DNA of 64,000 nucleotides from Selaginella moellendorffii (Eukaryota > Plantae > Lycopodiophyta), in NCBI RefSeq assembly GCF_000143415.4, contig NW_003314264.1, positions 352,774 through 416,773 on the forward strand, given 5' to 3'. Below are positions 12,201 through 36,507 of the stretch, in pieces. The stretch's first letter is position 1. Each line of letters begins with the position of its first letter. The notes below the pieces were generated by a model. The model was not told where the DNA came from and searched no databases. It was given only the letters and a program-made list of their open reading frames with translations. Position numbers and translations under genes: made by a program.

Positions 12201-14797
12201 ACCGAAGGAAAGGTGTGAAGCCAAAGGCAAGTAGTGTTGGGATGGAACTGAACCATAGAAATCAAAGGGCATATCCAATAGTGGTTATGAAAGTTGGGAG
12301 TGGAGAATCAAGAGGGTGTTCGAGGATGTTGTTGCTAGCAACCGTGATGCCATAGAGAGTCTAAAATATGGAATTGTCCATGTTAGACTATATGGCAACT
12401 ATAAAGCTTGCGAAAGGGGAGGCCTTAGCAAGCTGAGGGACAGAGTTCCTTCAAGGTTCCCAAAGACAATTCTAGGTAGCGTAGTACCTAGAAAGGCCAA
12501 GTGTAAATGGTTCATGGAACGCGCGAAATCAAAGTGGCGCAGCAGAAGCGTGGTCTTGAAGCTTGCCATGAGGCAAGGTTATCAAGGTTAGGGAAGTAGT
12601 TCCCGAGTGTTCAAAGAGAGGGCTTTGAACGAAAGTCGATGGTCAAGGACTTTCACGCTTATGCAGGAACCATGTTACAATGGTCGGAGAACTTGCCAAG
12701 TGAGATTGGCACGTCGGGGGAACAAAGACCCTAGTTGAAGGTGATAACTTCAAAAAGGGTGGGCCATGGGGCCGAGCATGGAGGAGTCCATGCATGATCA
12801 CAGACATGTCAAGTGAGAGGACTTGGTAGTGTGGAGGAACTAGGTTCCTAAGCTGTGATCTGTAGCGCGCTTTAAAAATAGGTTGGTGCACCGGCGTGGG
12901 GAGTCACGCCAGGCATCTAGTGTGATGCCGTCCGTAGATGCATATATGGAGGTTGGGTTCGAGTCCCGACCCTCTAGTGCTTGGGTTCGAGTCCCAAATC
13001 ACTAGGGCGTGGTGATGGTTTGGAATATGAGGACACTCATATTTCGGTGGTCATGGACTCTCAGTGGGGAGACTGGTTTGGGCACACCGCCAAGCGAGGG
13101 ATGCCTCAGAGTCGTGATGCACGGTTAGATTGCTTAGTGTGAAAGCTCGGCATATCTAACTTGAACGCTTTGGTGCAAGTGGCACCAAGGTCGTGGTGAG
13201 TGAGATGGGGACACCTAATCTCAGTTGCTATGAACCCTTGGCCGTAAGGGCTAGCTTGGGTGCACCGCCAAGTGTGGGGGATGCCCCCGGGGTTATAGTC
13301 AACAACTTGGAGGTCTAGAAGACCAAGTACCTCTTGGCAACTCTGTTGAGGTGCCAAGGTGAGATCACTAGGTGATCTTATGGCCAGATAAGGACAAGGT
13401 CCTTGGTTGGTTAAGGAATGAAGTTCCTGGTTCAAAATGTTGAAATTGAACTGTTTAAGATGGTGTGGCTTGGTCGTGATGACCAAGTGGGAAGAGCACC
13501 TAAGGGAAATAAACTATGTCCGTCCGATGGCATAGTAAGTCCGAGGAAAGTAGTCTCTATAAAAGACCCATGGGAGGGTCACGAAGTTGGGCCATGGATA
13601 GAGCCCATAGCAGAATATGCTAAAGAGACATACTAGGGGTGAACATCCTCCGGACTTGGCAAAGAAGAGTCTTTGCTATGGAACCGAAACAATACCTCAA
13701 GGAGGGAGGTAGAGATTCGATGTTGCTTGGTGCAACAATCAACGGATAGGAGCAAAAGATGAGTGGCCAAGATAGGGCCGTGGAATCCCTTGGAAGGAAT
13801 CCAAGTGACAAAGTTAGGCGAGGAACACTAATGTGTTGGACGCTAACAAGTTGCGGGAAAGGAAGTGTGTTTCCAAGGAGGGATTCCGAAATGCTCCAAG
13901 TTGGCGAAAGTGGAAGCTCCAAGGGAGGGAGCGGTAAGGTAGCCAAATGATAGGGCCATGAACAGCCCTAGCACAAAGTATGATAACTGGAACTTTGGCA
14001 CGAAATAGAAGAGAGGATGATGGTGCCCTCGAGTAGAGAACTTCCTAGGATGGGAAGTGGAGTTGCACAAAAGGTGCAAGGCAAGGTGTCGGAGACACCT
14101 AGGAAATTGACTCCAAGAAGTTGGAGAGACTACGCTCCTTAAAGGATGGACAAGGCATGGTGAGCCTTTGATGTCAAACCATAGACAAAGATTGGCTAGG
14201 TGCCAAAGATGGAAATGGTAACACATGTGGGTGTTACTTTATGAAAGGGTTTACCGTTCGATGGGGACATCGAACTTCGTCTATGGGTGGTGGAGTTGTG
14301 AGACACAAAATCCCTAGGCCCCAAAGTGGAGCCGGAAAGGGTGCCACGTGGTAGTGGCTGAAGCGAGAGCCAAACGAGCGTAACACGTTTGGACCAAAAG
14401 CTCCGACTTGAAAAGTCAAGAGCGGGAGTGGAACTCCCAAAGAAGGGCTCGAGGAACAAGCATGAAGCGAGCAAAAAGCGAGGCTCCAAAAAGGGACCCA
14501 AAAGGACCAACACATGACACGTGGGAGTGTCCGAGATGGACTCGACTTGGAGTCCGAAGTGGAGTCCGAGATGGACCCGAGTTGGAGTCCGAAGTGGAGT
14601 CCGAGATGGACCCGAGATGGAGTCCGAGATGGAGTCCGAAGTGGAGTCTGAGGTGGACCCGAGATGGACCCGAGATGGAGTCCGAAGTGGAGTCCGAGAT
14701 GGACCCGAGATGGAGTCCGAGGTGGAGTCCGAGATGGACCCGAGATGGAGTCCGAGATGGAGTCCGAGATGGAGTCCGAAGTCGAGACCGAGACCGG

Positions 14798-14841
<44 letters not shown>

Positions 14842-15962
14842 TCGGGACCGAGACCGAGACCAAGGCCGAGGCCGAGACCGAGCCCGAGCCCGAGCCCGAG
14901 TCCGAATCCGAGTTCGAGTCCGAGTCCGAGTCCAAGTCTGAGTCCGAGTCCGAGTCCGGAGCCTGAGAGGGTGAAAGCCCAAAGCGTTCGTCTCCCAGAC
15001 CCTGGGGGGTTTAGTGAGCTCCAAAAGTATAGTAAGGGGGAGGACTGCAGTGGAGCCAGTTTGGCCAGGAAAGGCCAGTTTGGCCCAGGAAGGCCAGACC
15101 CAGTGTTGGGTGAGGAACTGACCACTGGGAAGTCCAAGACTAGAGTGAATACGGACCGACAAGCGGGGTAGCTTGGTGAAGTGTTCAAAAGCCGGCTCTA
15201 GTTCCCCCGGGAGATCGACTGGCCGATGCTCCCAGTCCAAGTGTGGGTGGCACTACCTACTTGGATACCTGGTGTGGCTCAACGGAACCCGCTCTAAGCC
15301 CATGGCTAGAGCACCTAAAGGCAATAGGTGGGGAGAGTACCCAGGTGGCTCGCGTAAGGCCACGGTGTTCCGAAATGTTGTCCCAAAGGCCCAGACTGTG
15401 GAAAGGAAGAGGAGCAGTCCTCTGGGGTAGTGACCAAGGACACAGTCATGTGGTGAGGAAGTCCCAGAGGACCGTGGGACTTAGTGGTCGGGCCTGTGGG
15501 CCTCGATCCAGTGGCAGTGTTGGCAAACACGGCCAGGGGCAGAAAGGGACTTGGTAGGAACTGACAAAGGGACTTTGGGGAAGGCAATTCCCCAGGTCTG
15601 TGGGCATCCTAAGGATGCTAAGGAGTGGATCTAGGATGACCACTCGTGGACACATGGCCCAGTCTTGGAGAGACGAGGTGGTGATGCAAGTGGTGTTGAA
15701 CCACTAGTGCTGCAAAGGTGAATGGGCATGGCCTTAGCGTAACGGGCCGAGATGTCAGTGGTACCTTTGGGTGTCGGTCTCAGGACCGGACACGTGGAGC
15801 ACTTGGACTAGGTGCAAGTGTGGAGTGGCATGGATGCCATTCTTGGGGCTAGCAAGTCCCAAGTCCTGAATTGGACTGATGGAGGTTGTGAATGAGACTC
15901 CTCCAAGTGGTCGGAGGTGTGGTTAAGTGACTAAAGTAGAATGGAAAATTTAGTTGCTTACA
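8908..15962 (+). mobile_element. Complete non-autonomous LTR element (family A, LARD-like) inserted in B gag, TSD CTGCG
   Basis: LTRs 8908-10410 and 14297-15962; CTGCG at 8903-8907 and 15963-15967; PBS TGGTATCGGAGC 10414-10425; PPT 14283-14296; 3.9-kb interior without recognisable gag/pol ORF. Confidence 0.95.
10414..10425 (+). promoter_or_regulatory. Primer binding site, tRNA-iMet type
   Basis: TGGTATCGGAGC 3 nt after the LTR end (canonical TGGTATCAGAGC). Confidence 0.85.
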
Positions 15963-15967
15963 CTGCG

Positions 15968-16254
15968 CTGCCAGCATCCGTAGTATTTCGTTTTTTCTTC
16001 CGCTTCTCGTCACGCTTTAGCTTGCGTACGAGAGTCTCTAGCAGGGCATTGGTCTGTGCCAATTGTCCTTCTAGAACATCCAATCGAGCCTTGGACGACC
16101 GAACCTCACCACCAGACTCCTGTTTGGAAGTTGCCTCACTGGAGTCCTCCTCATGCAAGGATTCCTCATCCATCGCCTCTTGTTCGACCGGAGGCTCCAG
16201 CTCTGGAGGAGGTTCCGTCTCTGCCTGGGTTCGCTTACGTCCTGCCCTTGCCAT
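15968..16254 (-). pseudogene. gag: gag N-terminus of family B
   Basis: ATG just downstream of the PBS; continues at 8902 once the A insertion is removed. Confidence 0.88.
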
Positions 16255-16313
16255 CTCCCAGCAATCCGCCTCTATCCTTCGCTAGAACTGAGGAAGAGGC
16301 TTCGATACTAAAT

Positions 16314-17463
16314 TGTAAGCCACAAATTTTTCCTTTCCAATTTGCCAGCTTACCTCGCCTATCCGACCAACTTTGCCTTGGCTTGTGCTAAGTTCCCTCG
16401 CCAAGGTTCTCGCCTATGGTACCAGTTCCTACTTGGTTTCAGCTACTTACTACACGAGCAACGGAGTGTTAGCCATCCATCTACGGATTCCCAAATCTCT
16501 CCCAATCCCCCTCCCCGGGTTAGACTGAACTTAAGGTTCGGCTACACTCCCCGCAGGCACAAGCAGCCAAGCACACCAAGCCTCCAGATTCCTAACACCC
16601 TTTGGTACCACAAGACTTGATCATGGGACCCTCTAAATCCCAAGCCTTGAGTGCAACACTTGCTTCGGGACGTCGGGGCGAAACACCGTGGCCTAACGGC
16701 CCGGTATGGGTACCTCTACCCCCCCTCTTCCATCCCGAAGGGAAGGCCCAAGCCCCCGGAAGGGCGAGGACCAATGAGCCACAAGGTACTCAAGTGGGGC
16801 ACCACTCCACCTGAGCCGGGAGCACCGCAGTCGGTTTCCCTTTCGGGAGTGGGAGCTGCTCTTGAGCACTTCCTTGGATGGCCCCTCCGGCACTAGCCAA
16901 GTCCATGCTCACTCCCACCCAAGGCCCCTCGGTCCCAGTCTCAACCTCAAGTCGGTTTGGAAGCCCAACTGGAGAGTCCCTTCAAAACTGGTTCCTGGAC
17001 CTCACTATCCCTACTATACTTTTGGAACCCCCTGCAGCCCCCCCCCCCCCTGGGAGACGCACGCTTTGGGCTTTCACCCCTTGACCCGTATTAGTATTTG
17101 GACTTAGTCTCTAGCTCGATCTCGGACCCGATTTCAGATCCGACTTCGGATTCGGTCTCGGACTCGATTTCGGACTCGATCTCGGACCCGATCTCGGACC
17201 CGACCTCGGACTCGACCTCGGACTCGGTCTCGGACCCGATTTCGGATCTTGGACTCCGTCTCGAACTCGGTCTCGAACTCGGACTCGAACTCGGTCCCCG
17301 AGTTGGTCTCGGACTCGATTCCGGACTCTATCTCGAACTCGGTCCTAGAGTCGGTCTTGGACTCGATCCTCGACTTGGTCCCATCCGATGAACTCTTTGT
17401 CATTTCGGTCAAGCTTTTGGGGATCCTTTAGCCTACAACATCTCGGGGAGTCGGTTCTTTACA
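16314..17463 (-). mobile_element. Family-B 5' LTR
   Basis: Near-identical to 3077-4213 with a few substitutions and an extra 12-bp repeat unit; PBS-like TAGTATCGAAGC adjacent. Confidence 0.92.
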
Positions 17464-20373
17464 CCGGTCTCAATCTCGGTCTCGACCTCGGACTCCATCT
17501 TGGGTCCATCTTGGACTCCATCTCGGTCCATCTCGAAATCCATCTCAGGTGCATCTCGGACTCCATCTTGAGTCCATCTTGGTCCATCTTGGACTCCATC
17601 TCGGGTCCATCTCAGACTCCATCTTAGACTCCATCTTGGGTCCATCATGGATGCCATCTCAGGTCCATCTCAAGTCCATCTTGGACTCCATCTTGGGTCC
17701 ATCTCAGACTCCATCTCGGTCCATCTCAGACTCCATCTTGGGTCCATCTCAGACTCTATCTTGGACTCCATCTTGGGTCCATCTCAAACTCCATCTCAGG
17801 CCCATCTCGGGTCCATCCTAGACTCCATCTTAGGTCCATCTCAGTCTCCATCTCAGACTCCATCTCGGGTCCATCTCGGACTCCATCTGGGGTGCATCTC
17901 GGACTCCATCTCGGGCCCATCTTGGACTCCATCTTGGACTCCATCCCGGACTCCATTTCAGCCTCCATCTCAAGTCCATCTCGAACTCCATCTTGGACTC
18001 CATCTCAGATGTCCTGTCTCTCAAAGAATAGGCCATCCATCCAAGAGTGGTCATCCCAGATCCACTCCTTAGCATCCTTAATATGCCTGCACACCTAAAA
18101 ACAGTCTTCCCCAATATCCTTTTTTTAGTCCCCACCAAGTCCCTTTCTATCCATGGCTATGTTCACTAGCACTACCACTGGGTTAAGGCCCACAGGCCTG
18201 ACCACTAAGTCCCACTATCTTTTGGGACTTCCACAACATGTGACTATAACTTTGGTCACTATACCAGAGGATTGCCCCTTTTCTTTTCCACATTTTGGAA
18301 CTTTAAAACAATATTTCGGAACACCATGGCCATACGGGAGCCTCATGGGTACTCTCCCCACCTTTTGCCTTTGGGTGCTCTAGCCATAGGCTTAGAGTGA
18401 AGTTCCGTTGAGCCATGCTAAGTATTCAAATAGGTAGTGCCACTCACACTTGGACTGGGAGCATCGACCATTTGATTTCTGGAGGGAACTAGAGTTGGCT
18501 CTTGAACACTTCACCTAGGATCACGGGAAAGATAGAGACTCCAAAACAATAAAGGAGTCACAAGATTATCCTCATATAGTTAAGGTTGGTACTTATGAAT
18601 TTGAGACTAGAATTAATGACTGTGGGAGGTCAAATATGGAAGAGGACATGAGTCCTTGAAATGGTACTAGGGGTTACCCTCAATAAATGTTAGAACAACC
18701 CAAGGGATTAGGCATGTACTTAGAGGATGAGTTGGTATTCTCATCACATGGACAAATAGTCCTAAGGGGCAAAGGTAGCCCATATGGAACAAAGAATAAT
18801 CAAATGCCAGAGTAATACTTGCAAGAATGGTCCTTATAGGTAGGATATGAATACAAGAAACTGTATTTTAACGAGTTGACACCTAAAAAATGAGACTTTA
18901 TAGGTCGTCAGATTTGTGAAGTCCAAAAAGCTAGATGACTCAAGGAATGGTCCTAGAAGTCTAGTGGAAGCATTTGGACTGGGTGTGTTGTACCCCATAA
19001 AGGATGGGGAGGATCATAAGATCCAAGTGTGAGAACAGTGGGTTTTTTATTAATGGTAGAATGTGCCATACTAAAATTATGGGAAATAGGTTCCTAGAAG
19101 AAAACAACTTTGACACAAAGTTATATGTAAAGTATAAGATGCAATGCTAACAGATAGTTTGTATGAGAAACGACTTTATTGGTCTTGGCAAAGACCTAAA
19201 CACAAGTAAGAAGTGTCATAAAGTTAGGCTCGTGGAGCTGATGGTGTAGAGACATCGAATGTGCCAAGGCGTGATGCCTTGAGATCAAGTTGATAGGTTT
19301 ATGAGAGCCCCTTCCCAAAGGAATCCTAATGGAAATAAGAATGGCATAGTCTAAGCTGGAAGGCATGCAGTGAAAGTGTGGTGACCCAAAATAATGATGG
19401 AAGTGTGGAAGCACCAACAATGAGTTGTAGAACTTGACAACTATGAGGCAACTGAGCAAAAAGGTGTAAAATAATTGATTAAACTGGTAGTAGGTAACTA
19501 TATAAGACTTTTTATTGGGATAAGGAAGTTAAACATACCCTTATAAAGGATAAATTACTCATGTTGTGATATAGTAAGTCAAAGTCGTAAAAGGAATGCT
19601 CATTGCCAAAGAAGGCCATTATTAGGACACCCAAACACTCTAAAACACTAGGAAGTGGTGTTTGGTGTCGTGAAGGCATTAAATAAGGCCCAAGGGATTA
19701 AGTCCCTAGCGAATGATAGATAGAAAGTGTTATTCAAATGTCCAAAGTTATGGAGACGAGAGAAGTCCGTTTATCCGAATTAGACAAATCCAAAAAAAAC
19801 TTTAGCATCCTCGACAAGATTAATCTTATATTCTATAAGTTGGGTAAGGTGTAACCCTGTTGGTAATTCTTATGACATGGTATCTCAAAAGTGGTTTAAC
19901 ACCTACTAGATCACAAAAGATACTTCCTTTGTTTCTGTCTTTTTATCACTCCGCATTGAGAGTAAACATAAAAATGCTACCTTGGTTTCTTTAGTGCATT
20001 GTCCTCTTATGAACACCAAATTCAAAAACAAAATTCTTTAGCCTTACATTGTCCTACCTTTAGATCTTGGGCTTCCACCCTAAATCGTTCTCCTCAAGCA
20101 TTTATCAGTACCACCAAGTTTCTACTTTGTCTATGCAAGGTGACCATAAATTAATTGAATCAATCAATTTTGAAGATCACGTCAAATCCCGCCATATCCA
20201 AAACAGTGAAATCCATGTTTATTTACTAAATCCTTATTTTGACTCTTGCTTGTTGAAGTACGTCATTAGTGCTTTGGCTACCTTGAACAAACTTTATAGT
20301 CCTTGGTTCTCCCAACAGCTACACTATTAGTTTGGTTTACCAGAATATGTTTGTAGCCACAAAATTATCCAAA
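17464..20373. mobile_element. Older scrambled remnants: reversed A-LTR pieces (17464-18515), A internal (about 18516-19800), B-like protease region (about 19800-20373)
   Basis: Similar to 2230-2600, to 1185-1690 (reversed), to 10722-12000 and to 7540-8053, with heavy CG>TG/CA decay. Confidence 0.8.
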
Positions 20374-20404
20374 TGTCATAAATATGACTGCAGATATTGA
20401 AAGT

Positions 20405-20428
20405 AAGCTCTATTTCGTTAAAGTGGGA
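20405..20428 (+). repeat. Left TIR AAGCTCTATTTCGTTAAAGTGGGA
   Basis: Reverse complement of 27552-27575 with one mismatch. Confidence 0.9.
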
Positions 20429-21093
20429 TTTATTCAGTAAAATGGGACTAGGTACAAATTTTCAAGTATTTGAAAATGACGTGAAATTATATGTTTTTTG
20501 TCCAGGGGCTAGACATATCTGGGGCATGGTGACTAGCGCGGTGACTTTGTGTCCAGACTGAGTCCATCTGGTTGTATAATAAATCTCATTGTTAAGGTGA
20601 ACAAGCCGAATCTGAAGCTAAAGAAGAACGATGGCATGCGCGCACACACTATTTGTTTGTTCATTGAGCGTGTGGTGAGCTTTCCAAGATGAACGTCATT
20701 CCTATTAGCCAGACATATAACTTAATGGTGAGAACATTTAGATATTATTCAATGTTATCTTTTTCTAACGAATCTAATTCTGAAGGTGTAGCAAGAGGCA
20801 TTGCTAGTCTGGAGAAGTCATTTAACTCATTTGACCCTTAGTGTATTTTCATGAAACTAAATAACATTCATATTATTAAGGAATTTCTCTAGTACCTTTT
20901 TTTTACGACATAGAGGCTTGCATTTCTTTCAAAGGTGATTTAGTAAAAGGCCTGAGGGCACATGCCATTCTATTTCTCAGACCGGTATTAAGATATACTA
21001 GTGCAAAGGGCCACATGCCATCACGCCTCCTCTGATTCAGATTCGGATTGTTCACCTTGAAATAAAATACATTAGAAACTTAGTAAAGGAATA

Positions 21094-24000
21094 TTAATGA
21101 ATCTTACCTTGAACCCGGGTTATGAATGCTCTTGCTGCATCTCTTGCATGGTCTGGCAAGGTGATGGTGGCACTCTGCTTCCGCATCCAACCATGCACAA
21201 CATTATCCACCGATATGCTCATGCTGGGATCCCTTGGATTCAGCACCCATCTCTTTTCTAGGCAATCCTTCGTATATCCGGAACTTGGCTTGAACCACTC
21301 CACAGTTACATTGAAGGAGTTAGTTTCCGCGTCCTCCTCTGCATCAGTGATGCAGCGCCCCACCCATATCATTTGATTTTTATTACTGGGTCTAACAAGC
21401 ACGACCATTCCTTTGCAGACCTATACTGGATTGAATGCTGAATCCGGCTTCTTGTTCCTCGGCCCACAATAGTGATCCTCAACATCGTTATCTGTCACTG
21501 CATTTCCAGAGGACATTGTTCCGCTACTATCTGGTGCTCTGGGTTCTGGCCAAAAGGACTCTTCCAATTCTTCATATACAACCGACCCATTTTGGATAGC
21601 AGATATAATCTTCTCCCAGTATTCGAGCAAAGGCTTGCACCTCTTAAAATAGGATTCTCCACCAAACACCAACCCCCTCTTCCAGAAGGCAATATGCTGT
21701 CTAATCCCGGCCACTATACTTTCCTGGTCTTTGAGTCCATCCGGGTGCATTGGCCGTGGGGAACCCTGAGGAATCATAGGTTCCCCAGTTATGGGATCTC
21801 TCTTGAAGAGTTCAATGCCATCCACTGGCAGCCACACTGTGTCCCATTCTCTCATCTTGTACCTCATCACTGGAGCACCGTCACGCATGTTGAAATGAAA
21901 CTGAAGAGGCTTGGAGTGGCCAATCAGCGTTTCGGATCCGTCCCTGATGTAGCCTCTTACAAACCCCTTAAAGTCTGGAACCTCTGTCACAAGTGCAGCT
22001 TCAACAGTGCCTTTGATGCAATTTTGGAATTCATCGTAGAGTTGTGGGAGGGTGAGGACATTGGATCGCCGGAGGGACTCTGCCAGGTGACTGAACATGG
22101 CATCGACGTCTTCATGAGTGTGCCCAACCATGAGAAAGCCAAGTGTAACCGTTTCAAATATGCCTTTGGCAACAAGCATCGCCAAGTACGCGAAGACGTA
22201 CATGTTTTTGTTCTCACTGCCAGCATTGTCTGTTTGGAGCAGAAGATGGGGTGGAAGGCCACATCGGCCGCAAGAACTTCCTTGAGATTCTGCTTCGTTT
22301 GGATGAGGCTATGCATTCACCGGGCGACCAGCCTCGTCGGAATGGCATGAGGCCTCACGTGATAACCCTACAATCTGACGGCCAACATATTCACTGGGAT
22401 GGCATGGGGCCCCACGCGATACTGCAAGCCTTTGCTCCTCCTCCAGCTGAACCCTGTATGGGGTTCGATCGACAAGGGCCTTATGCAAGGGTTGGCCGTT
22501 CAACTCAGTCTGCACACTTTGCAGAGACCTTAAGTGTTTTGCTAGGGACGCAATCATCATGTTTGCACCCCCGCCACCCCATAGAGGTACAAAGAAGTTC
22601 CCATAGTTCTGGGCACCATGCCCATGAGCGATTATGCCAAACAGAGACACAGGCAGCTGCATGGATGAAGAGATTGCCTTGGGGGCAGGATTGAGTCGAG
22701 GTAAGCACGTCTTTTTCTGGTCCATTTTGTCGTGGATGATGCAGAGGTAAGAGTCAGGTCTCTCCATGGAGAGAATCCTGTTATGATAATATGCAGTCCT
22801 GCAGCTTCTCTGCTCGATGTTGTGGTCGAGCCGCCTTCTAACCAACGTCTCTCGCTCTTGAGCGCTGCAAGAATTCTTCGACAAAGCCATTTTGATAGCA
22901 GTGCACTCGTCACACTTTGAAAAGCTGGAGTACTTTCCTATACTCACATCCCTGAACCTGTTGCTCCATAATCTACTAAATCTAGATTGGCTCAGCTTCC
23001 TGTAGCCATTACTCTGGAGTTCCCGATTCACATCTTCCAATATGGCCCCCTTGGTATACATGGAAGGGAGAACTCGTTGGATGTCTCGTGTTCCATCTTC
23101 CAAGAGGCGGGTTTTATGTGGTTGCTGCTCGCTACATGTCTCGACAAACCTCTTGAAGATTGCCTCTCTATATACAACATGACCCCTGGTTTTGTGCGTA
23201 CCGTCGTTCCCATGGACTGCCTGTTGAACCCTTTGTTCCTCGAACTCAGTTTTGATTCTATAGAATGTGCTTCAAGGGACTCCATAAATGATTCTCCATG
23301 CCTTCATGCAGACCAAACCCCTCTGGAAGACCATGCCCCCCACCTGATGTTCTGAAGCATCAACAGATGACCGTAATGCCTCATACACAAAATTGTGAGC
23401 TGCCTTCCAGGACAATGTCTTGTATCTTGCTCTCTCCTCTTCAATAGCATCCCAATCAGCATGTTGACAGCACCTCCTCTTGCAACAAGCAACTGTCGAG
23501 ACCATTCGAACCTCCATCGCCATTTTCTACCTTTTCGGTTCGTTGCTCAGATCCCGTTGGCTGCGCTGTAGGAAGGTGTACTTTCTTTTCCTATGAAGAG
23601 ATGTTCTGTCATCAGTTATAGTGGTGTTTGATTGTGAATCCTTCACATTCTCAAACACTAAATGCCTCAATTTCCACCGCACAATGCTTCCAATAGTCAG
23701 ACTGTTTTCTTCTGTGTCAACAACCTCTAAAATCGCAACTCCAATATCATCCCAGCCCAATTCTTGATTAGCAACCGCATCTCTTGGATCGACAACTGTG
23801 GCTAAGCCCTCAGCTACCACCTCCCCCTCGGGGTTGTTTAGAAACACCTTTGCCTGAATCCATGTAGCACGGTTCTTAAGATCCACGGAGGGAACATGCG
23901 TCGCACTTGCGCTGTCCCCAACATCTGCTTTCTTCTGCAGATTTTTCAAGGCAACAACAACATTTACCTCGACGACCATCTCTCCTCGTTCAATAGCGAC

Positions 24001-24213
24001 CACATTCCCATCGAAGATAGTCTCTACTGATACAGCAGCATTGCCTTCCCCAAGCCTTTGACAGTGTATAACAAAGTTCCGATCCATAGACACAAGGGTC
24101 CCTTTTGCAACTCTCTTCCCACCATTCAATAGCAGGTGGGTCACCTGCTTCCGACTCCAAGGGCAAATGCGTTGTCGAGTACAACTGCGGCGGACTATTC
24201 TTTCGAGCCGCAC
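21094..24213 (-). pseudogene. Transposase, about 1040 codons in one frame with 4 premature stops; N-terminal TnpA/Tnp1-like repeats, Cys motifs, RNase H-like core
   Basis: ORFs 23527-24213, 23272-23523, 22309-23103, 21421-22203 and 21094-21408 share one frame; motifs CCKRRCC, VC..AW..IYGVP, FSKCDEC, IIHDKMD, LQTDNAGSENKN, FLMVGHTHEDVDAMFS. Confidence 0.85.
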
Positions 24214-27133
24214 TACTCAAGGGTGTCCCATGTGTTGCGGTGACAAACTCCATTGAAGAGGTGACTTCAATGGAGCATATAATTACAGTTGCCAAAGAAA
24301 AACAGTATCTTCTCTGTGAACCTAGTGAGTACACACTTTAAGTTTAAATGTTATCTCACAAGCTCTGTATGCAGGAGCGTGGCCACCCCCAGATGCTGAA
24401 ACGGTGTTAACAGCTACTGTTGAAGATACCCATGTTGGGCCGAGCTCACAACCTGCACAAGGTAAGGTCACGTGAGGCCTCACGCCATTTTGATTATAGA
24501 TCGTTGTGAATATTCAGACACGAGGACTGAAAAGCGCACTGGTGGCGCATCGAAGAAGGACAAACAGACAAGCAATAGGAAAAAAGGAGGTACAAATTAT
24601 ATTTGCAATGGCGTGTGGTCTCATGCCATTCCTTGCAGGAGAAACTTCTTCAAAGGCAAAACAGGCAAGCACCAGCCAAGCTCAAACTGACAGTGGTCAT
24701 AAAAAGCGAAAGCACGTTGGACAGTCGTCGAGATCAGAGGCGTTTGATTCGAAAAGGAAGAAGGGCAACGAAAAGATGATAGGTAATGCCTCGCGGTTAT
24801 GGCGTGTGTGCTCATGCCATTCATTGCAGATCAAGGGCTGAGTGAAAGCAGGCAGTCACCACCTCCTGACTCAGATTCCTATGGCGGACTCCCCTTCCCC
24901 AATCTCAATGGAGAGGTACAATGGATGAGGGAAGCTTTTCAAGTCAAGGCCACGTTTTTCTCATCTTGTCGTCTTCGAAGGGTGCAAGAACGTGCAGAAA
25001 CCATGTTAAGACAGTCGGGTGAGGATACGGTCCTAGGTCACGCACTAAAACAGGCTATGGATGTCTTGTCTTTTGAGATGGAGACTCGGCCAAATGATTT
25101 TCCCAAGATGGTCCTGGAAGAACAAGCCATCCAGCCTGAGCAGCCTATGGAAGAAATGCAGGAGGGGGATGAGGAGCCAGAGAAAGATAATGAGCAGGAA
25201 GAGCAGAAGGACGAAGAGGAGGACGAAGAAGAGGAGGACGAAGAGGACTTGGATGGTCCTCACAATGGTGACGATCACAATAACGACGACGACGATGATG
25301 ACGACGATGCCCAGCCTGAGGTGGCCAAAGAGCAGCGGAGGAAGGTCATACAAGACAAACCATCAGGTAAATAATAGTACATCCATTCCTAACCTTTTAC
25401 CATTTCTAACATTGTCCATGTAGGTCGCAGAGCAAATGGTAAGTAGAGATTATTCAGTTGAATTTACAAACTCTAGCCTTTAGTGTCGAGGAAGGATAGT
25501 GCCAAGCAAGGGTCGAAACGTATGTCCAATCCTTCAGAATCAGCAGTGCGCCCAAGTGATATCGGTCCTAGTTCCTCAATAGCAGTTGATGGTAAATACA
25601 ATATAGTCGATTCAATGTGCTAATGAGTTTGTTTTTAGTAGCACGGGAGGATACCATCTCAATCGAAGGGAGATATTTGGACATGCATATGGATCCGCCA
25701 GTGGACTCTACTTGGCTGCAAGAGTCATCAGAGCTGGTGGAGGCTACTATCCATATCAACGCCAAGCAAGCTGACCACGCTCCACTTGATGCTGCCCATA
25801 CCACTGAGTCAATCTTGTCCTCGTATCCAACTGACGGTGACCAGGCGCCATTGGACCCACATGAGGCCGCCCCAGCCGCCGAGCCGGTCGTATCCTCATT
25901 TCCAACAGACTCAACGTGTGCCCAATCGTCTGACTACGCGCCGTTGGAACCTCCCTACACCGCCCCTGCTGCCTGTTCGGTCATGTCCACTTTGCCAACG
26001 GAGGCACCAGCTGAAATGGCGTGTGATCACACGCCATTGGAACCACCCCATGCCACTGTTGAGCCAGTTGTACCAGAGTCTACAGCTGAAATGGCATGTG
26101 CCCACACGCCATCGGATGCAATTGACCCCACATTGCAGAGGAGAGTATTTCCGCCCTTCACGTTTCCTCGACCAAAACCCTCTCAACGACCATTGGGAGC
26201 ACCATTCGCTAATATTGTAGATGGTAAAATTGACTTGTACCATTTTTTATGCTGACGCATTTCATTTCAGAGTCACGGCGAAGGTACTGTATCATTTTTG
26301 ATCTGAACGGTGTCCTTTTCTCCCATGAGCGTGGCTCGTCCTCGAATGTCATTGCACCCTCCAAAGCCTGCGGTCGCAAGTTGGTCAAAAGAGACAGATT
26401 CACATTAATCACACGGGAGAAACTGCGGGATCTAATAATGACCATGCGACACTTAAAACAGAGGGCCGGGTTCAATTTGCAATTGGGAGTTTGGACATCC
26501 ATGATGCGCCACAATGCATTAACGTTGCTACAGATGATGCACGATCAGACGCGAGTAATATTACCATTTGACTTTCTCCTAACGCAGGAGGATTGCTTGA
26601 CTATGGTCCATGTGAGGGGTAGCAAGCCCATCTTCGTCAAGCCAGAGGCTGTAGTGATGAACCGGACTGCTAGCTCAAGTGAAATCCTCATCATCGATGA
26701 CTCGCCGATTAAAACTGCAGCGAACACGCACACATATGCAGTGCACCCCATCTCTTGCAGTATGGAAACTAGGGAGAAGAAACCGTATGTTCTGGGGGAC
26801 CTTGCAAAACGGCTTAGAGCGATGGTGATAGAGAACCGGCCAGTCCAGGAGGTGGCTGCAGAAATCAACCAAATGGCAGATGGAACGGTATATCAGAAGC
26901 CATTTGATCGGACAGACACCAGTCATCATTTATGGCATGTATATTGTCTAGCCAAGCACTATCCGCATCTCCATAATCTGCTCAACCGGATGGGTTCTTC
27001 GACCACTGAACATGAGCGTGGACGTATTAGAGAAGAGATGGCATTATTATTGGGTTTAAATCCTGATAGTGTGGAGAGTGATGAAATTCCAAGATTATTG
27101 TATAGGCGTTGGAGGCAAAAAATAACAGTCTGA
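24105..27133 (+). CDS. Transposon cargo gene, 9 exons, about 870 aa, 5' end uncertain: basic NLS-like segments, acidic tract, Pro/Ala repeats, C-terminal FCP1/NIF-like HAD phosphatase domain
   Basis: GT-AG introns 24325-24374, 24462-24517, 24590-24638, 24783-24829, 25367-25423, 25439-25483, 25592-25638, 26224-26270 give one open frame; motifs IIFDLNGVL, GVWTSMM, KPIFVK, LIIDDSPIK. Confidence 0.8.
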
Positions 27134-27551
27134 GATGGCATGTATTTATTTAAAAATGTAACTTATTATGGCATGGGGTTCCATGCCATTGTATTGATAT
27201 TAAAAGACAATTCTTTGAGAGGATTTGCATTATACTAGAAGTGTTACAGCATGTTATTGGAAGTCTACGAAGTTGTTTTATTAATAAGGGGAAAGTAAAG
27301 ATTGAATGGGGACTTGGGCTCCACCTAGACTTGGAGCAACTGAGCCAATATTAAAAGGATGGAAAGAAATTGGACGACGATGACAAGGAGAAGAGAGAGG
27401 TGAAGCAGTGGCAGGGGGAGGAGAAGTGATTGAGTAGACATTTCCTTGTTTAAAATAAAATGGCATGTGCCTCAATGCAGTTGAATTTTGTTATATTTAT
27501 ATACTATATAAAGGTTTGGAAACCTTATTTTACAAGTGGGATAATGACAAT

Positions 27552-27575
27552 TCCCATTTTAACGAAATAGAGCTT
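27552..27575 (-). repeat. Right TIR
   Basis: TCCCATTTTAACGAAATAGAGCTT. Confidence 0.9.
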
Positions 27576-28194
27576 TATTCAGTTCCATTGGCTATTTATG
27601 CAAAGTGTCTAGATTTGCTAATTTGGCATATTTAAAGAATGTAGAGATTATCCTAAATAAAATGGTGTTAGTTCCATATACAAATTTAAAATTTAGCATT
27701 ATTCCATCTTTAGTAAGTTTCAAACTTGTCCCAGAGATTATCTTTTGGTACTAAGGGTGACGAAGGGTGAAAGCCCAAAGTGTGCGTTCCTAAAAGGAGG
27801 GGTGCTATGGGAGGTTCTAAATATATAGTAAGGATAGTGGGTAGATTAGGCATAGTTGACCAACTTGAGGCATAATCTAGCTTCTGCTTGTATGCTTGAC
27901 TTTATTTTGCGTCCGGCTTGGGTCTAAGCCCAAGTTCCATTCTATACTAGATAGCAGAGTACCCATATCCTCGCATTAAGCCATTGGTATGCGAAAATAG
28001 TGCCAAATTATATTTGGCTTCATTTTGTATGTTGGTCCTAGCATTGGGATGCTGGAAGCTCTAGAATTGTTCTAATATTACTCTGTGTTCTTATCCCTTT
28101 GCTCTATGGGTTGCACGCTTAAAAATTGCTCTATGCTTTAGTACCTTTACTCCTTGGCTCCATGCTTAAGAGTTTGGTTCTATCCCTTCATTCA

Positions 28195-31005: not shown

Positions 31006-31426
31006 TGTCGCGAATGTGACTTCAGGTATCGAAAGTTACCTGTCGGCTAGTCCTTTCGGATATTCTTTCCTTACTGCCATGACGGCAGGAGATCGATATT
31101 GTTGGACCCGTTATCAGTTCCCACTTGAGCTAGTTGAGAAACTGGTCATTGACCATGCACTTAAATCGGATAAACATAAAGTAGGAACTCCTATGTGTTT
31201 CTTGCTGAGCATACTCGGCCTGGTTTGAGAAACTCCTGTCATTGGCTTACACTTGCTAGTATCAAGAACCCCTGTGATATTGAGCTTGGTCCCTCAATAT
31301 CACTAGATGATAGCTTACCGTGTTTGCCAAACACCCTCGCTATTATGCCTTTTGTGTTAGTCTCATTTTGGTCCCAAATGCTATTTATGGAAAGTGTCTA
31401 GATTTGCTCTGGCATATCTATGGCAT
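31006..31426 (+). repeat. Repeat family C (LTR-like, begins TGTCGCGAATGTGAC), truncated by assembly gap
   Basis: Paralogs start at 20374 and 36734; inverted terminus at about 33769-33796. Confidence 0.7.
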
Positions 31427-31835
31427 NNNNNNNNNNNNNNNNNNNNNNNNNNNNNNNNNNNNNNNNNNNNNNNNNNNNNNNNNNNNNNNNNNNNNNNNNN
31501 NNNNNNNNNNNNNNNNNNNNNNNNNNNNNNNNNNNNNNNNNNNNNNNNNNNNNNNNNNNNNNNNNNNNNNNNNNNNNNNNNNNNNNNNNNNNNNNNNNNN
31601 NNNNNNNNNNNNNNNNNNNNNNNNNNNNNNNNNNNNNNNNNNNNNNNNNNNNNNNNNNNNNNNNNNNNNNNNNNNNNNNNNNNNNNNNNNNNNNNNNNNN
31701 NNNNNNNNNNNNNNNNNNNNNNNNNNNNNNNNNNNNNNNNNNNNNNNNNNNNNNNNNNNNNNNNNNNNNNNNNNNNNNNNNNNNNNNNNNNNNNNNNNNN
31801 NNNNNNNNNNNNNNNNNNNNNNNNNNNNNNNNNNN
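31427..31835. other. Assembly gap (N run)
   Basis: N bases. Confidence 1.
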
Positions 31836-32989
31836 ATGGACAAAGCTTACCAGATACATCAACGGATCAGTATTTGCATTGACTGCAAGAAAAGCTTGAG
31901 GAAAGCAACGAAAGTTACTCACCTCTTCTTCCTCATAGTCTGCATTGACCAACTCGTCAACCCCTTCAGCTTCACCACCACCGTCTTCCCTCATGACATT
32001 AACCTGAGACCTTGTCTTATGCTTATTGGGACATTTCGAGGACCTATATCCCGACTCTCCACAATGGAAACAATGACCCACACTACCTATTCCGCTAGGA
32101 GTAGGTTTTGCAGGTTGTTACTGCTTGTACCCACTAGGAGGAGGAATAGAGGGCCTAGGACCAAAAGAAGCTACTGGTGGTCTCCAACCACCACCACCTT
32201 TATTAACTGTTACTTGTGAGCCTCCAGGGTAGAACCTACTTTCCACCCTCTATTTCCGATCACCTTGTTTATTTCCAGAATTCCTATTCTTGTCCGAGTT
32301 ACCAGCATACGGTTGCTGATATTGTTCCATGAGCGAGTGACTAAAGGCAACTTGCTGCACTGCCTCCTTACACTCTAGGTACGTCCTTGGCTTAAACTTC
32401 AAAATCTCATTACGAGAAAGTGAACTTAAACCCTCCAAGAAATAACTTCGAGCATCTTCGTCACTCATATTTGCAATCATAATGCACTTTTGAGCAAACG
32501 CATTAACGTAATGCATGAGATCCCCTCGCTACTTTAACTGCCGCAGCTCCGCGCGAAGTCTTAGACCAAGATCATCCGGCAAGTATTCCTTATAGATACG
32601 AGACCGCATCTTGGTCCAACTTCTAGTCTGCCCTTTTTCAGCACATACCTGGCGCCACCAAGTTTTGGCATGATCGGTGAGAAAGGATTGCGCGCACGCA
32701 ACTTTCATACGATCATCTACGTCTGCCGCTATGAAATAGTTTTCCATATCATAGACCCAGTCCTCCAAAACTTGATAGTCCCGCATGCCTCCTTCTTCAA
32801 TTTGCGAATCTCCCTTCGCAAATTCTCGATCTCGACTTCCTAAGCTGTACGCTGCAACACCGCAGCATCTGGCTCTTGCTCTTCCGACTTGGCCTCAACC
32901 TCTTCCGCAACATCTCTAGCAGGAGTTTCCTTCTCTCGATTCGCCTGTCTAGAGGTTTTAGCATTATCAGCATGGTTTTTCTTCACCAT
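31836..32989 (-). pseudogene. gag: gag of a further Ty3/Gypsy family (D), degraded
   Basis: VLEDWVYDMENYF..AKTWW..YFLEGL; degenerate knuckle CFHCGESGYRSSKC; stops and frameshifts. Confidence 0.85.
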
Positions 32990-33796: not shown

Positions 33797-36507
33797 ATAA
33801 AGTTCCTAATTCAAAGTGTTGAATTGAACTATTGATGATGGTGTGGCTTGGTCAAAGTGACCAAGTGGAAAGAACACCTAATGGAAATGATTTGTGGCAA
33901 TGCAATAGCATAGTGAGTCCGAAGAAAGTAATCTCTATAAAAGACCCATGGGAGGGTCATAAAGTTGGGCTAGGGATAAAGCCCACAATAGAAAATGCTA
34001 AAGAGACTTATTAAAGGTGAACACCCTCTAGACTTAGCAAAACAAAGTCTTTGCTATGGAACCGAAAGGATATCTCGAGAATGGAGGTAGCAATCCAATG
34101 TTGCTAAGTGCAACAATCAAGGATAAGAGCAAAAGACTAGTGGCTAAGAAAAGAGACATGGGAATCATGAGAAAGAATCCAAAACGCAAAGTTAGGCCAA
34201 GAACATTAATGTGTTAGATGCTAACGAATTGTGGGAAAGGCAATGTGTTTCCATGGATGAATTCCTAATTGCTTCGATTTGGCGAAAGTGGAAGCTCCAA
34301 AGGCAAAAAGCAGTAAAGTAGCCAAATGATAGGGACGTGGGTAGCCCTAGCACGAATTAAGATAACTGGAACTTAGTGCCAAAGGTCGCATAAAATGAGA
34401 AAGAGGATGATAGTGCCCTCAAACAGAAAACTTCCAAAGATGGGAAGTGGAGTTGTGCAATATGTGCAATGTAAAGTGCTGGAGACACTTAGGAAATTGA
34501 CTCTAACAAGTCAAATTTAAAAGTTCCAGAGTGCAAGTTTATATCAATAGGAACTGAGGCTACTCAGGAGTGAGTAGCGGGATTGAGATAGAGGAGGTGC
34601 CTCTAACAGGTTTAGCAAACACTAAACCAATGAAAGGGAAAGAACCACCATAGGTGATCGATTGAGTCTCCATGTCAGAGAGGCTATGTGCCTTAGAGGA
34701 TGGAGAAGGCATGGTGAGCCTTCGGTGTCAGACCATTGACGGATATTGATTAGGTGCTAAGGATGGAAAGGGTAATACATGTTGGTATTACTTTATAAAA
34801 ATGGTTTACTGTTCGATGAGGATATTGAACTTTGTTTATGGGTGGTGGAGTTGTGAAACACAAAATCCCTAAGCCCTAAAGTGGAGCCGAAAGGGCACCA
34901 CGTGGTAGTGGCCAAAGCGAAAGCCAAACGAGCGTAACATGTTTGGATTAAAAACTCCAACTTGAAAGGTCGAGAGCGGGAGTGGAACTCCCAACAAAGT
35001 GCTCAAGGAATGAGCACAAAGCGAGCAATAAGCAAGGCTCTAAAATGGGACCTAGAAAGGACCGAGACGGAGTCCGAGATGGAGTCCGAGATGGACCCGA
35101 GATGGAGTTCGAGATGGAGTCTGAGATGGACCAAGACAGAGTCCGAGATGAAGTCCAAGATGGACCCGAGATGGAGTCTAAGATGGAGTCTGAGATGGAG
35201 TCCGAGATGGACCGAGACAGAGTTCGAGATGGAGTTTGAGATGGAGTCTGNNNNNNNNNNNNNNNNNNNNNNNNNNNNNNNNNNNNNNNNNNNNNNNNNN
35301 NNNNNNNNNNNNNNNNNNNNNNNNNNNNNNNNNNNNNNNNNNNNNNNNNNTGGACCCGAGTTGGAGTCCGAGATGGACCTGAGATGGAGTCCGAGATGGA
35401 GTCCGAGATGGACCCGAGATGGAATCCGAGATGGAGTCCGAGAAGGACCTGAGATGGAGTCTGAGGTCGAGACCGAGACTGGGACCGAGACCGAGACCGA
35501 GATCGGGACCGAGACCGAGACCAGGACCAAGGCCGAGGCCGAGACCGAGGCCGAGTCCGAGTCCGAGTCCGAGCTCCAAAAGTATAGCAAGGGGGAGGAT
35601 TGTAGTGGAGCCAATTTGGCCAGGAAAGGCTAGTTTGGCCCAAGAAGGCTATACCCAAGTGTTGGGTGATGAGCTGACCACTGGGAAGTCCAAGACTAGA
35701 GTGAACATGGACCGACAAGCGGGGTAGCTTGGTGAAGTATTCAAGAGCCGGCTCTAATTCCCCCGGGAGATCGACTAGCCGATGCTTCCAGTCCAAGTGT
35801 GGGTGGCACTACCTACTTGGATACTTGGTGTGGCTCAACGGAACCTCGCTCTAAGCCCATGGCTAGAGCATCTAAAGGCAGAAGGCGGGGAGAGTACCCA
35901 TAAGGGCCACGTAAGTTTCGAAATGTTATCCCAAAGTCCCAGATTGTGGAAAGGAAGAGGAGTAGCCCTCTGGTGTGGTGACCAAGGACACAGTCACACA
36001 GTGAGGAAGTCCTAGAGGACAGTGGGACTTAATGGTCAGGCCCGTGGTCCTTGATCTAGTGGCAGTGTTGGCGAACATGGCCAAGGACAAAAAGGGATTT
36101 AGTGGGGACTGGAAAGGAGATATTGGGGAAGGCTATTCCCCATGTCTGTGGGCATCTTAAGGATGCTAAGGAGTGGATCTGAGATGACCACTCATGGTCG
36201 GATGGCTAGTCTTGGAAAGACGGGATTGCAATGCAGGTGGTGTTGGACCACCGATGTGGCCAAGATGAATGGGCATAGCCTAGCGTAATAGGCTGGTATG
36301 TTGGTGGTACCTTGGGGTGTTGATCATGGGATCGGACACGTGGAGCACTTGGACCAAGTGCAAAGGTTGAGTGGCATGAATGTCATTTTTGGGGCGAGCA
36401 AGCCTAAGTCTTGAATTGGATTTATGGAGGTTGTGAATGAAACTCCTCCAAATGGTCGAAGGTATGGTTAAGTGACTAAAGTAGAATGAAAAATTTAGTC
36501 ACTTACA
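33797..36507 (+). mobile_element. Truncated family-A element: 3' internal region plus 3' LTR (34852-36507, with 100-N gap at 35251-35350)
   Basis: Homologous to 13417-15962; PPT before 34852; ends CTTACA. Confidence 0.9.

Follow-up and report, generated by a model that had tools for sequence, protein, structure and literature searches.

Few accessory genes of DNA transposons are known, and those that have been studied (VANC, TnpA and the Harbinger Myb protein) reveal how elements escape silencing or recognize their own DNA. Here we describe a locus of the lycophyte Selaginella moellendorffii, positions 20405 to 27575 of a 64-kb stretch of genomic DNA (the window), at which a transposase gene and a long accessory gene with predicted introns lie divergently between terminal inverted repeats (TIRs). 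A comparable arrangement was published in 2025 for Ectocarpus, where a 21.5-kb Sola1 element carries on the strand opposite to its transposase an accessory gene encoding a ParB-like domain and a DNA methyltransferase; in the authors' proposal, the target of the accessory protein is the DNA of the element itself (PMC12477816). Both are cut-and-paste elements in which TIRs enclose the gene of a large transposase and, on the opposite strand, an accessory gene that is also long (PMC12477816), a likeness of layout, since the transposase in the window is placed by its DUF7869 match and not by a Sola1 profile. They differ in size, the Selaginella element measuring 7.2 kb, and in the accessory gene, where Pfam finds only an FCP1-like domain of the HAD type in place of the ParB and methylase domains of Ectocarpus. 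We take the element for a compact form of a known kind of two-gene transposon, not for a new system. In presenting the locus as a possibly undescribed system, an initial annotation made from the sequence had therefore claimed too much, as the opposite-strand accessory gene of Sola1 was already in print (PMC12477816), although in the searchable literature we found no paper tying an FCP1 or carboxy-terminal domain (CTD) phosphatase domain to a transposon, and none mentioning DUF7869. An FCP1-like accessory domain thus seems to be unreported there.

We conclude that positions 20405 to 27575 are probably a dead, methylation-decayed copy of a young, multicopy, 7.2-kb two-gene cut-and-paste transposon, and that the accessory gene belongs to the element itself (Table 1). 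The inverted repeats, which had been given as 24 nucleotides (nt) long, extend to 27 nt, of which 25 are complementary (93%); the 24-mer first proposed matches the right end with one mismatch and has no further match in the window, where none is expected by chance. The minus-strand transposase frame with its four stops was likewise confirmed, and its C-terminal half holds the DUF7869 match found with Pfam. Its N-terminal 228 codons give a weak, subthreshold Pfam match to TNP1/EN/SPM (E = 0.017) and are kept in the DUF7869 elements of the liverwort Riccia (tblastn, E values down to 5e-10). DUF7869 transposases of liverworts and metagenomes are 30 to 46% identical to the transposase in the window, and a near-identical transposase fragment (P0019) was also found, for which no contig is on record. 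The last 108 transposase codons (21097-21420, minus strand) are without a Pfam match. The frame ends in GTAAG, a candidate splice donor, and a further exon is possible.

Table 1. Features of the Selaginella element, in window coordinates
Feature	Position	Strand	Details
Left TIR	20405-20431	+	AGCT at 20406-20409 may instead be a 4-bp target-site duplication
Spaced palindrome array	20631-27481		About 14 copies of 22 bp (ATGGCRTG N6 CAYGCCAT); motif count
Transposase frame	21094-24213	-	1,040 codons in a single frame; four in-frame stops, no frameshift
In-frame stops of the transposase	23527-29 (TAG), 23272-74 (TGA), 22309-11 (TAG), 21421-23 (TAG)	-	Frame reading
DUF7869 (PF25273) match	21847-22200	-	E = 4e-30; includes the DDE-core motifs DNAG..NKN and GHTHEDVD
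N-terminal transposase region	23530-24213	-	228 codons; joined to the remainder in the family majority
Accessory gene (predicted)	24270-27133	+	Nine exons, eight introns; ATG at 24270, stop at 27131-27133; 827 amino acids
Accessory exons 1-5 (predicted)	24270-24324, 24375-24461, 24500-24589, 24639-24782, 24830-25366	+	
Accessory exons 6-9 (predicted)	25424-25438, 25484-25591, 25639-26223, 26271-27133	+	
Introns 1-4 (predicted)	24325-24374, 24462-24499, 24590-24638, 24783-24829	+	50, 38, 49 and 47 nt
Introns 5-8 (predicted)	25367-25423, 25439-25483, 25592-25638, 26224-26270	+	57, 45, 47 and 47 nt
NIF/FCP1-type HAD domain	26285-26731	+	Pfam NIF, fold model and profile
HAD nucleophile Asp	26300-26302	+	
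Asn replacing the second Asp	26306-26308	+	
Right TIR	27549-27575	-	AGCT at 27571-27574 may instead be the matching target-site duplication

Four public sequencing runs were placed on positions 21700 to 27690, a span that stops short of the fourth transposase stop. In the DNA run, summed contig depth, which is not the same as copy number, lay between 0.57 and 0.89 million throughout the bins of the element and was equal over the transposase and the accessory gene. Because seven sites are polymorphic, at 15 to 69% of this depth, several distinct copies of the element exist. Joints that delete internal parts of the element account for at most about 1% of the depth. The repeat comprises the full 7.2 kb, and there is no abundant form without the second gene.

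At 28 sites the letter in the window differs from nearly all of the DNA-run depth, and these private differences tell how this copy has decayed. The three transposase stops within the covered span are all private C-to-T changes, the majority reading CAG at the first, CGA at the second and CAG at the third of the positions listed in Table 1; with CAG at the first of them, the N-terminal region and the remaining transposase form one reading frame. When majority letters are used, the transposase and accessory frames are both open wherever they are covered, and a G precedes the intron 1 donor at position -1. Among the private transitions, 22 of 25 are C-to-T changes at CG or CHG, contexts that hold 32% of cytosines and would be expected to receive that share, and this excess indicates that the copy has been methylated and is decaying by deamination. 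Methylation at CG and CHG probably silenced this copy, with deamination then producing the transposase stops. The initial annotation had laid weight on the contrast between an open accessory frame and a broken transposase. That weight is lost, because the covered stops go back to deamination-type changes found in this copy alone; that the accessory gene has no stop here is a matter of chance.

The predicted structure of the accessory gene agreed with the initial annotation in most respects. Eight introns with GT-AG borders and an uninterrupted frame were recovered, with donors that are all GTR and acceptors that are all YAG, but the proposed length range of 45 to 57 nt did not hold for intron 2. 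GC content is 37% in the introns and 50% in the exons, and retention of any single intron destroys the frame with a stop. The frame remains open for another 60 codons upstream of the ATG, which is compatible with the earlier estimate of about 870 codons. The 15-nt micro-exon 6 is doubtful; the frame is also preserved when it is skipped. Apart from the HAD domain, the predicted product has basic clusters, a short helical region, an acidic tract and Pro-rich repeats, and with its basic clusters and acidic tract it looks like a nuclear protein. We searched the large exons for ParB and methylase domains and obtained no Pfam match at E values up to 0.1; the other exons are short basic or low-complexity segments. 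For the N-terminal domain, an Atlas search returned no usable match, and a single-sequence fold had a predicted local distance difference test score (pLDDT) of 63.7, too poor for a structure search.

Pfam NIF (PF03031) scored 25.8 bits on the last exon against a curated cut-off of 21.8 (E = 9.6e-6), and the HAD motifs DLNGV, WTS, K and IDDSP were all found. An exhaustive HMMER search with this exon across 1.84 billion protein representatives returned just 15 matches, the best with an E value of 9e-6 and about 33% identity; 10 of these remote matches were tested, and all 10 were NIF proteins. Three other searches came back empty: a word-index search for homologues of the exon, in an index of proteins of 158 to 502 amino acids; a scan of metagenome loci with the single HAD protein; and a phmmer search of the exon against PDB sequences. 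A profile of the HAD alignment run against the PDB matched UBLCP1 (1e-10), CTDNEP1 and SCP. An AlphaFold model built on the alignment of HAD relatives reached a pLDDT of 80.9, and its top 32 Foldseek matches in the PDB were SCP1-3, CTDNEP1, FCP1, TIM50 and UBLCP1, with SCP1 the best (E = 3e-8). Profile and fold both came out as had been anticipated from the motifs, and the divergent gene is most plausibly an accessory gene of the transposon, predicted to be spliced and ending in a genuine FCP1/SCP-fold domain. With the FCP1/SCP family (SCP1/CTDSP1, CTDNEP1, FCP1, UBLCP1 and the noncatalytic TIM50) the domain has in common the fold, the nucleophile Asp, the Ser/Thr, the Lys and the Asp-Asp pair. 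It differs in being borne by a transposon, in an additional helical stretch of about 90 residues at its C terminus, in an identity below 20%, and in motif I, which is D-x-N-G-V instead of D-x-D-x-T; a D-x-D-x-T/V motif with both aspartates is absent, the residues here being D-L-N-G-V.

The initial annotation had treated this Asp-to-Asn replacement as an alteration of the copy in the window. In an alignment of the window domain with its 15 nearest relatives, however, D10, N12 and G13 do not vary in any of the 16 sequences, and neither do the motif II Trp (W-T-S), the motif III Lys (K123) and the motif IV Asp-Asp (D142-D143). Because the Asn is shared by every one of these relatives, the alignment marks D-x-N-G as the signature of a subgroup of NIF proteins and not as decay of this copy. 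The alignment includes a plant host protein, the FCP1-like protein of Morus notabilis; the subgroup, present in host genomes too, appears to be uncharacterized. Two further observations concern its wider distribution. A 5.5-kb metagenome contig from ENA (L007) bears two tandem, intronless D-x-N-G NIF genes, and the Atlas clusters nearest to the HAD exon by protein-language-model features are FCP1-homology proteins of Nucleocytoviricota (score, 0.96). A link between the D-x-N-G subgroup and giant viruses is possible.

When a HAD enzyme loses its general-acid Asp, catalysis is slowed or trapped. Given that this Asp is missing in the element's domain, whereas the nucleophile Asp, the Ser/Thr, the Lys and the Asp-Asp pair are kept, a binding or slow-turnover role seems likelier than that of a fast phosphatase. 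The module would bind a phosphoprotein or dephosphorylate it slowly, with the CTD of RNA polymerase II as the obvious candidate target, and might in this way help the element's expression or transposition. A bolder version, which we put forward as a long shot, is that the FCP1-like D-x-N-G module, and not ParB or methylase, is the conserved accessory core of land-plant DUF7869/Sola1-like transposons, where it would trap the phospho-CTD, or dephosphorylate it very slowly, and thereby link the element's palindrome-marked DNA to RNA polymerase, to drive expression or evade silencing. If true, this would add a functional class to those known among transposon accessory proteins.

The spaced palindromes in question form an array that is largely confined to the element, with 19 half-sites inside it and 3 in the other 56.8 kb of the window. 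Introns 2, 3 and 4 have one palindrome each, and the transposase frame has two. A further two, in exon 8, code for a repeated peptide (..MAC.HTP..), and the others occupy the noncoding ends. About 1% of the DNA-run depth (7,455) skips 59 nt within 24795-24855, including the palindrome of intron 4, an indel variant among the copies. Because the palindromes persist here without a ParB domain, the transposase is the likelier binder, and it is probably the transposase, not a ParB domain, that docks at the 22-bp palindromes. In this compact family, a CTD-phosphatase-like module and private palindromes persist without the ParB and methylase domains reported for related elements; ParB is probably dispensable for the palindromes, and the HAD module may be what has been retained. 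The element is also small and tractable for bench work.

Several observations weigh against a multicopy family with a working accessory gene of its own. Private changes in the accessory gene are nonsynonymous at 10 sites and synonymous at 3 (the transposase has 5 and 6, plus the three stops), all seven shared polymorphisms are nonsynonymous, and purifying selection was not visible at the shallow depth among copies. Two RNA sequencing runs placed no reads on the mapped span, a result that we rated as no test of expression. The two frames lie head to head, less than 60 bp apart, and the 5' ends given here are provisional. The distance between summed contig depth and copy number limits what can be claimed from the DNA run, and no NIF domain lies within 10 kb of the DUF7869 elements found in Riccia, in Calypogeia and in metagenomes; the pairing of DUF7869 with NIF is not general to the transposase family. 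Separately, a run that had been taken for RNA covers both genes, but its only intron-spanning contig, at intron 8, is unspliced; the run is probably DNA, and we dropped it as evidence of expression.

The nonsynonymous excess and the lack of RNA reads would suit the view that the plus-strand frame is no functional gene at all but the truncated relic of an older accessory gene, with the transposase alone moving the family, and so would a product that is mostly low complexity outside the HAD domain, a poor N-terminal model and a doubtful micro-exon. We nevertheless hold this to be quite improbable: a frame of 827 to 887 codons is open in this copy and in the majority, the splice sites of all eight introns are canonical, with the G at -1 of the intron 1 donor in the majority, and the HAD motif residues common to the subgroup are all intact. 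Capture of a host gene, which the term "cargo" in the initial annotation had implied, finds little in its favor. Since nothing close to the HAD exon was found among the 1.84 billion protein representatives or in the word-index and metagenome searches, recent capture from a Selaginella host gene is excluded, and the accessory gene would be the family's own. In a Pack-type version of the idea, the HAD gene would be a host fragment that the lineage picked up once and has carried as passive cargo without a role. Host genes of the D-x-N-G subgroup do exist in plants, as in Morus notabilis, the liverwort and metagenome DUF7869 elements do without a NIF domain, and purifying selection among copies is not seen, all of which such a capture would accommodate. 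The remoteness of the best match and the lack of a similar host parent mean, however, that any capture was ancient, and the complete, intron-bearing 827-codon frame that is open in the family majority, the depth shared evenly with the transposase, and the presence of the element's palindromes within the introns and exons of the accessory gene lead us to give this explanation very little credence.

The initial annotation itself favored an active anti-silencing phosphatase that would act on the RNA polymerase II CTD or on a chromatin protein, in a role like that of VANC or TnpA. The fold, which is closest to the CTD phosphatases SCP1-3, CTDNEP1 and FCP1, and the nuclear-type basic clusters and acidic tract of the product are consistent with such an activity, and the accessory gene resembles those of VANC (VANDAL21) and TnpA (En/Spm) in being the second gene of a plant DNA transposon with a presumed action on the element's own repeated sites. 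It has, however, no sequence or fold relationship to either protein, Asn stands in place of the general acid/base Asp throughout the subgroup, and the copy at hand is methylated and decayed, hence not protected. We regard this proposal as unlikely, and prefer to see the locus as a decayed copy of a two-gene family whose HAD module, if it acts, would do so by binding or slow turnover.

We also looked for the combination of features in other species. A profile of the NIF subgroup, run over twelve loci, matched only at one Riccia sorocarpa locus (L002, CM100799.1), besides L007, which had itself been chosen by its NIF protein. The Riccia locus was considered as a case of linkage across species and rejected: the element that it has in common with three other loci (L004-L006) ends at about 12.9 kb, and the NIF-like open reading frame (ORF) and array at 15.4 to 21 kb are a separate unit. 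Between 15450 and 21040 of L002, a long-palindrome array with 18 exact matches (GGCGGAAAAG .. CTTTTCCGCC) surrounds a NIF-like ORF on the minus strand (16085-16621; Pfam NIF, 1e-8) whose motif IV is degenerate, and a search with this ORF found nothing. A second NIF-like ORF lies at 63-458 and has D-F-E-G as its motif I. In this liverwort locus, NIF-like ORFs are embedded in a palindrome array.

The outer limits of the Selaginella element can be drawn in more than one way. AGCT stands on either side of positions 20410 to 27570, compatible with a 4-bp target-site duplication; being palindromic, it is indistinguishable from TIR sequence. Sola1 elements are said to have TIRs together with a 4-bp target-site duplication. 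When we sought longer TIRs or a duplication further out, we found weak similarity of the flanks and no clean target-site duplication beyond the ambiguous AGCT. The weak similarity is inverted and joins the flanks at 27576-27640 and 20289-20404. To the right of the TIR, DNA-run depth stays high for about 60 bp (250,738 at position 27635) and then drops about 30-fold, with summed depths of 18,010 at 27650 and 8,357 at 27655. Another repeat may enclose the element, or the true ends of the element may be longer, degenerate and further out. Elsewhere in the window, long ORFs occur in several frames and on both strands at 14196-15240, 31320-32219 and 34948-35796, and the DNA from 30 to 32 kb has a GC content of only 27%; these ORFs are probably low-complexity or repeat DNA.

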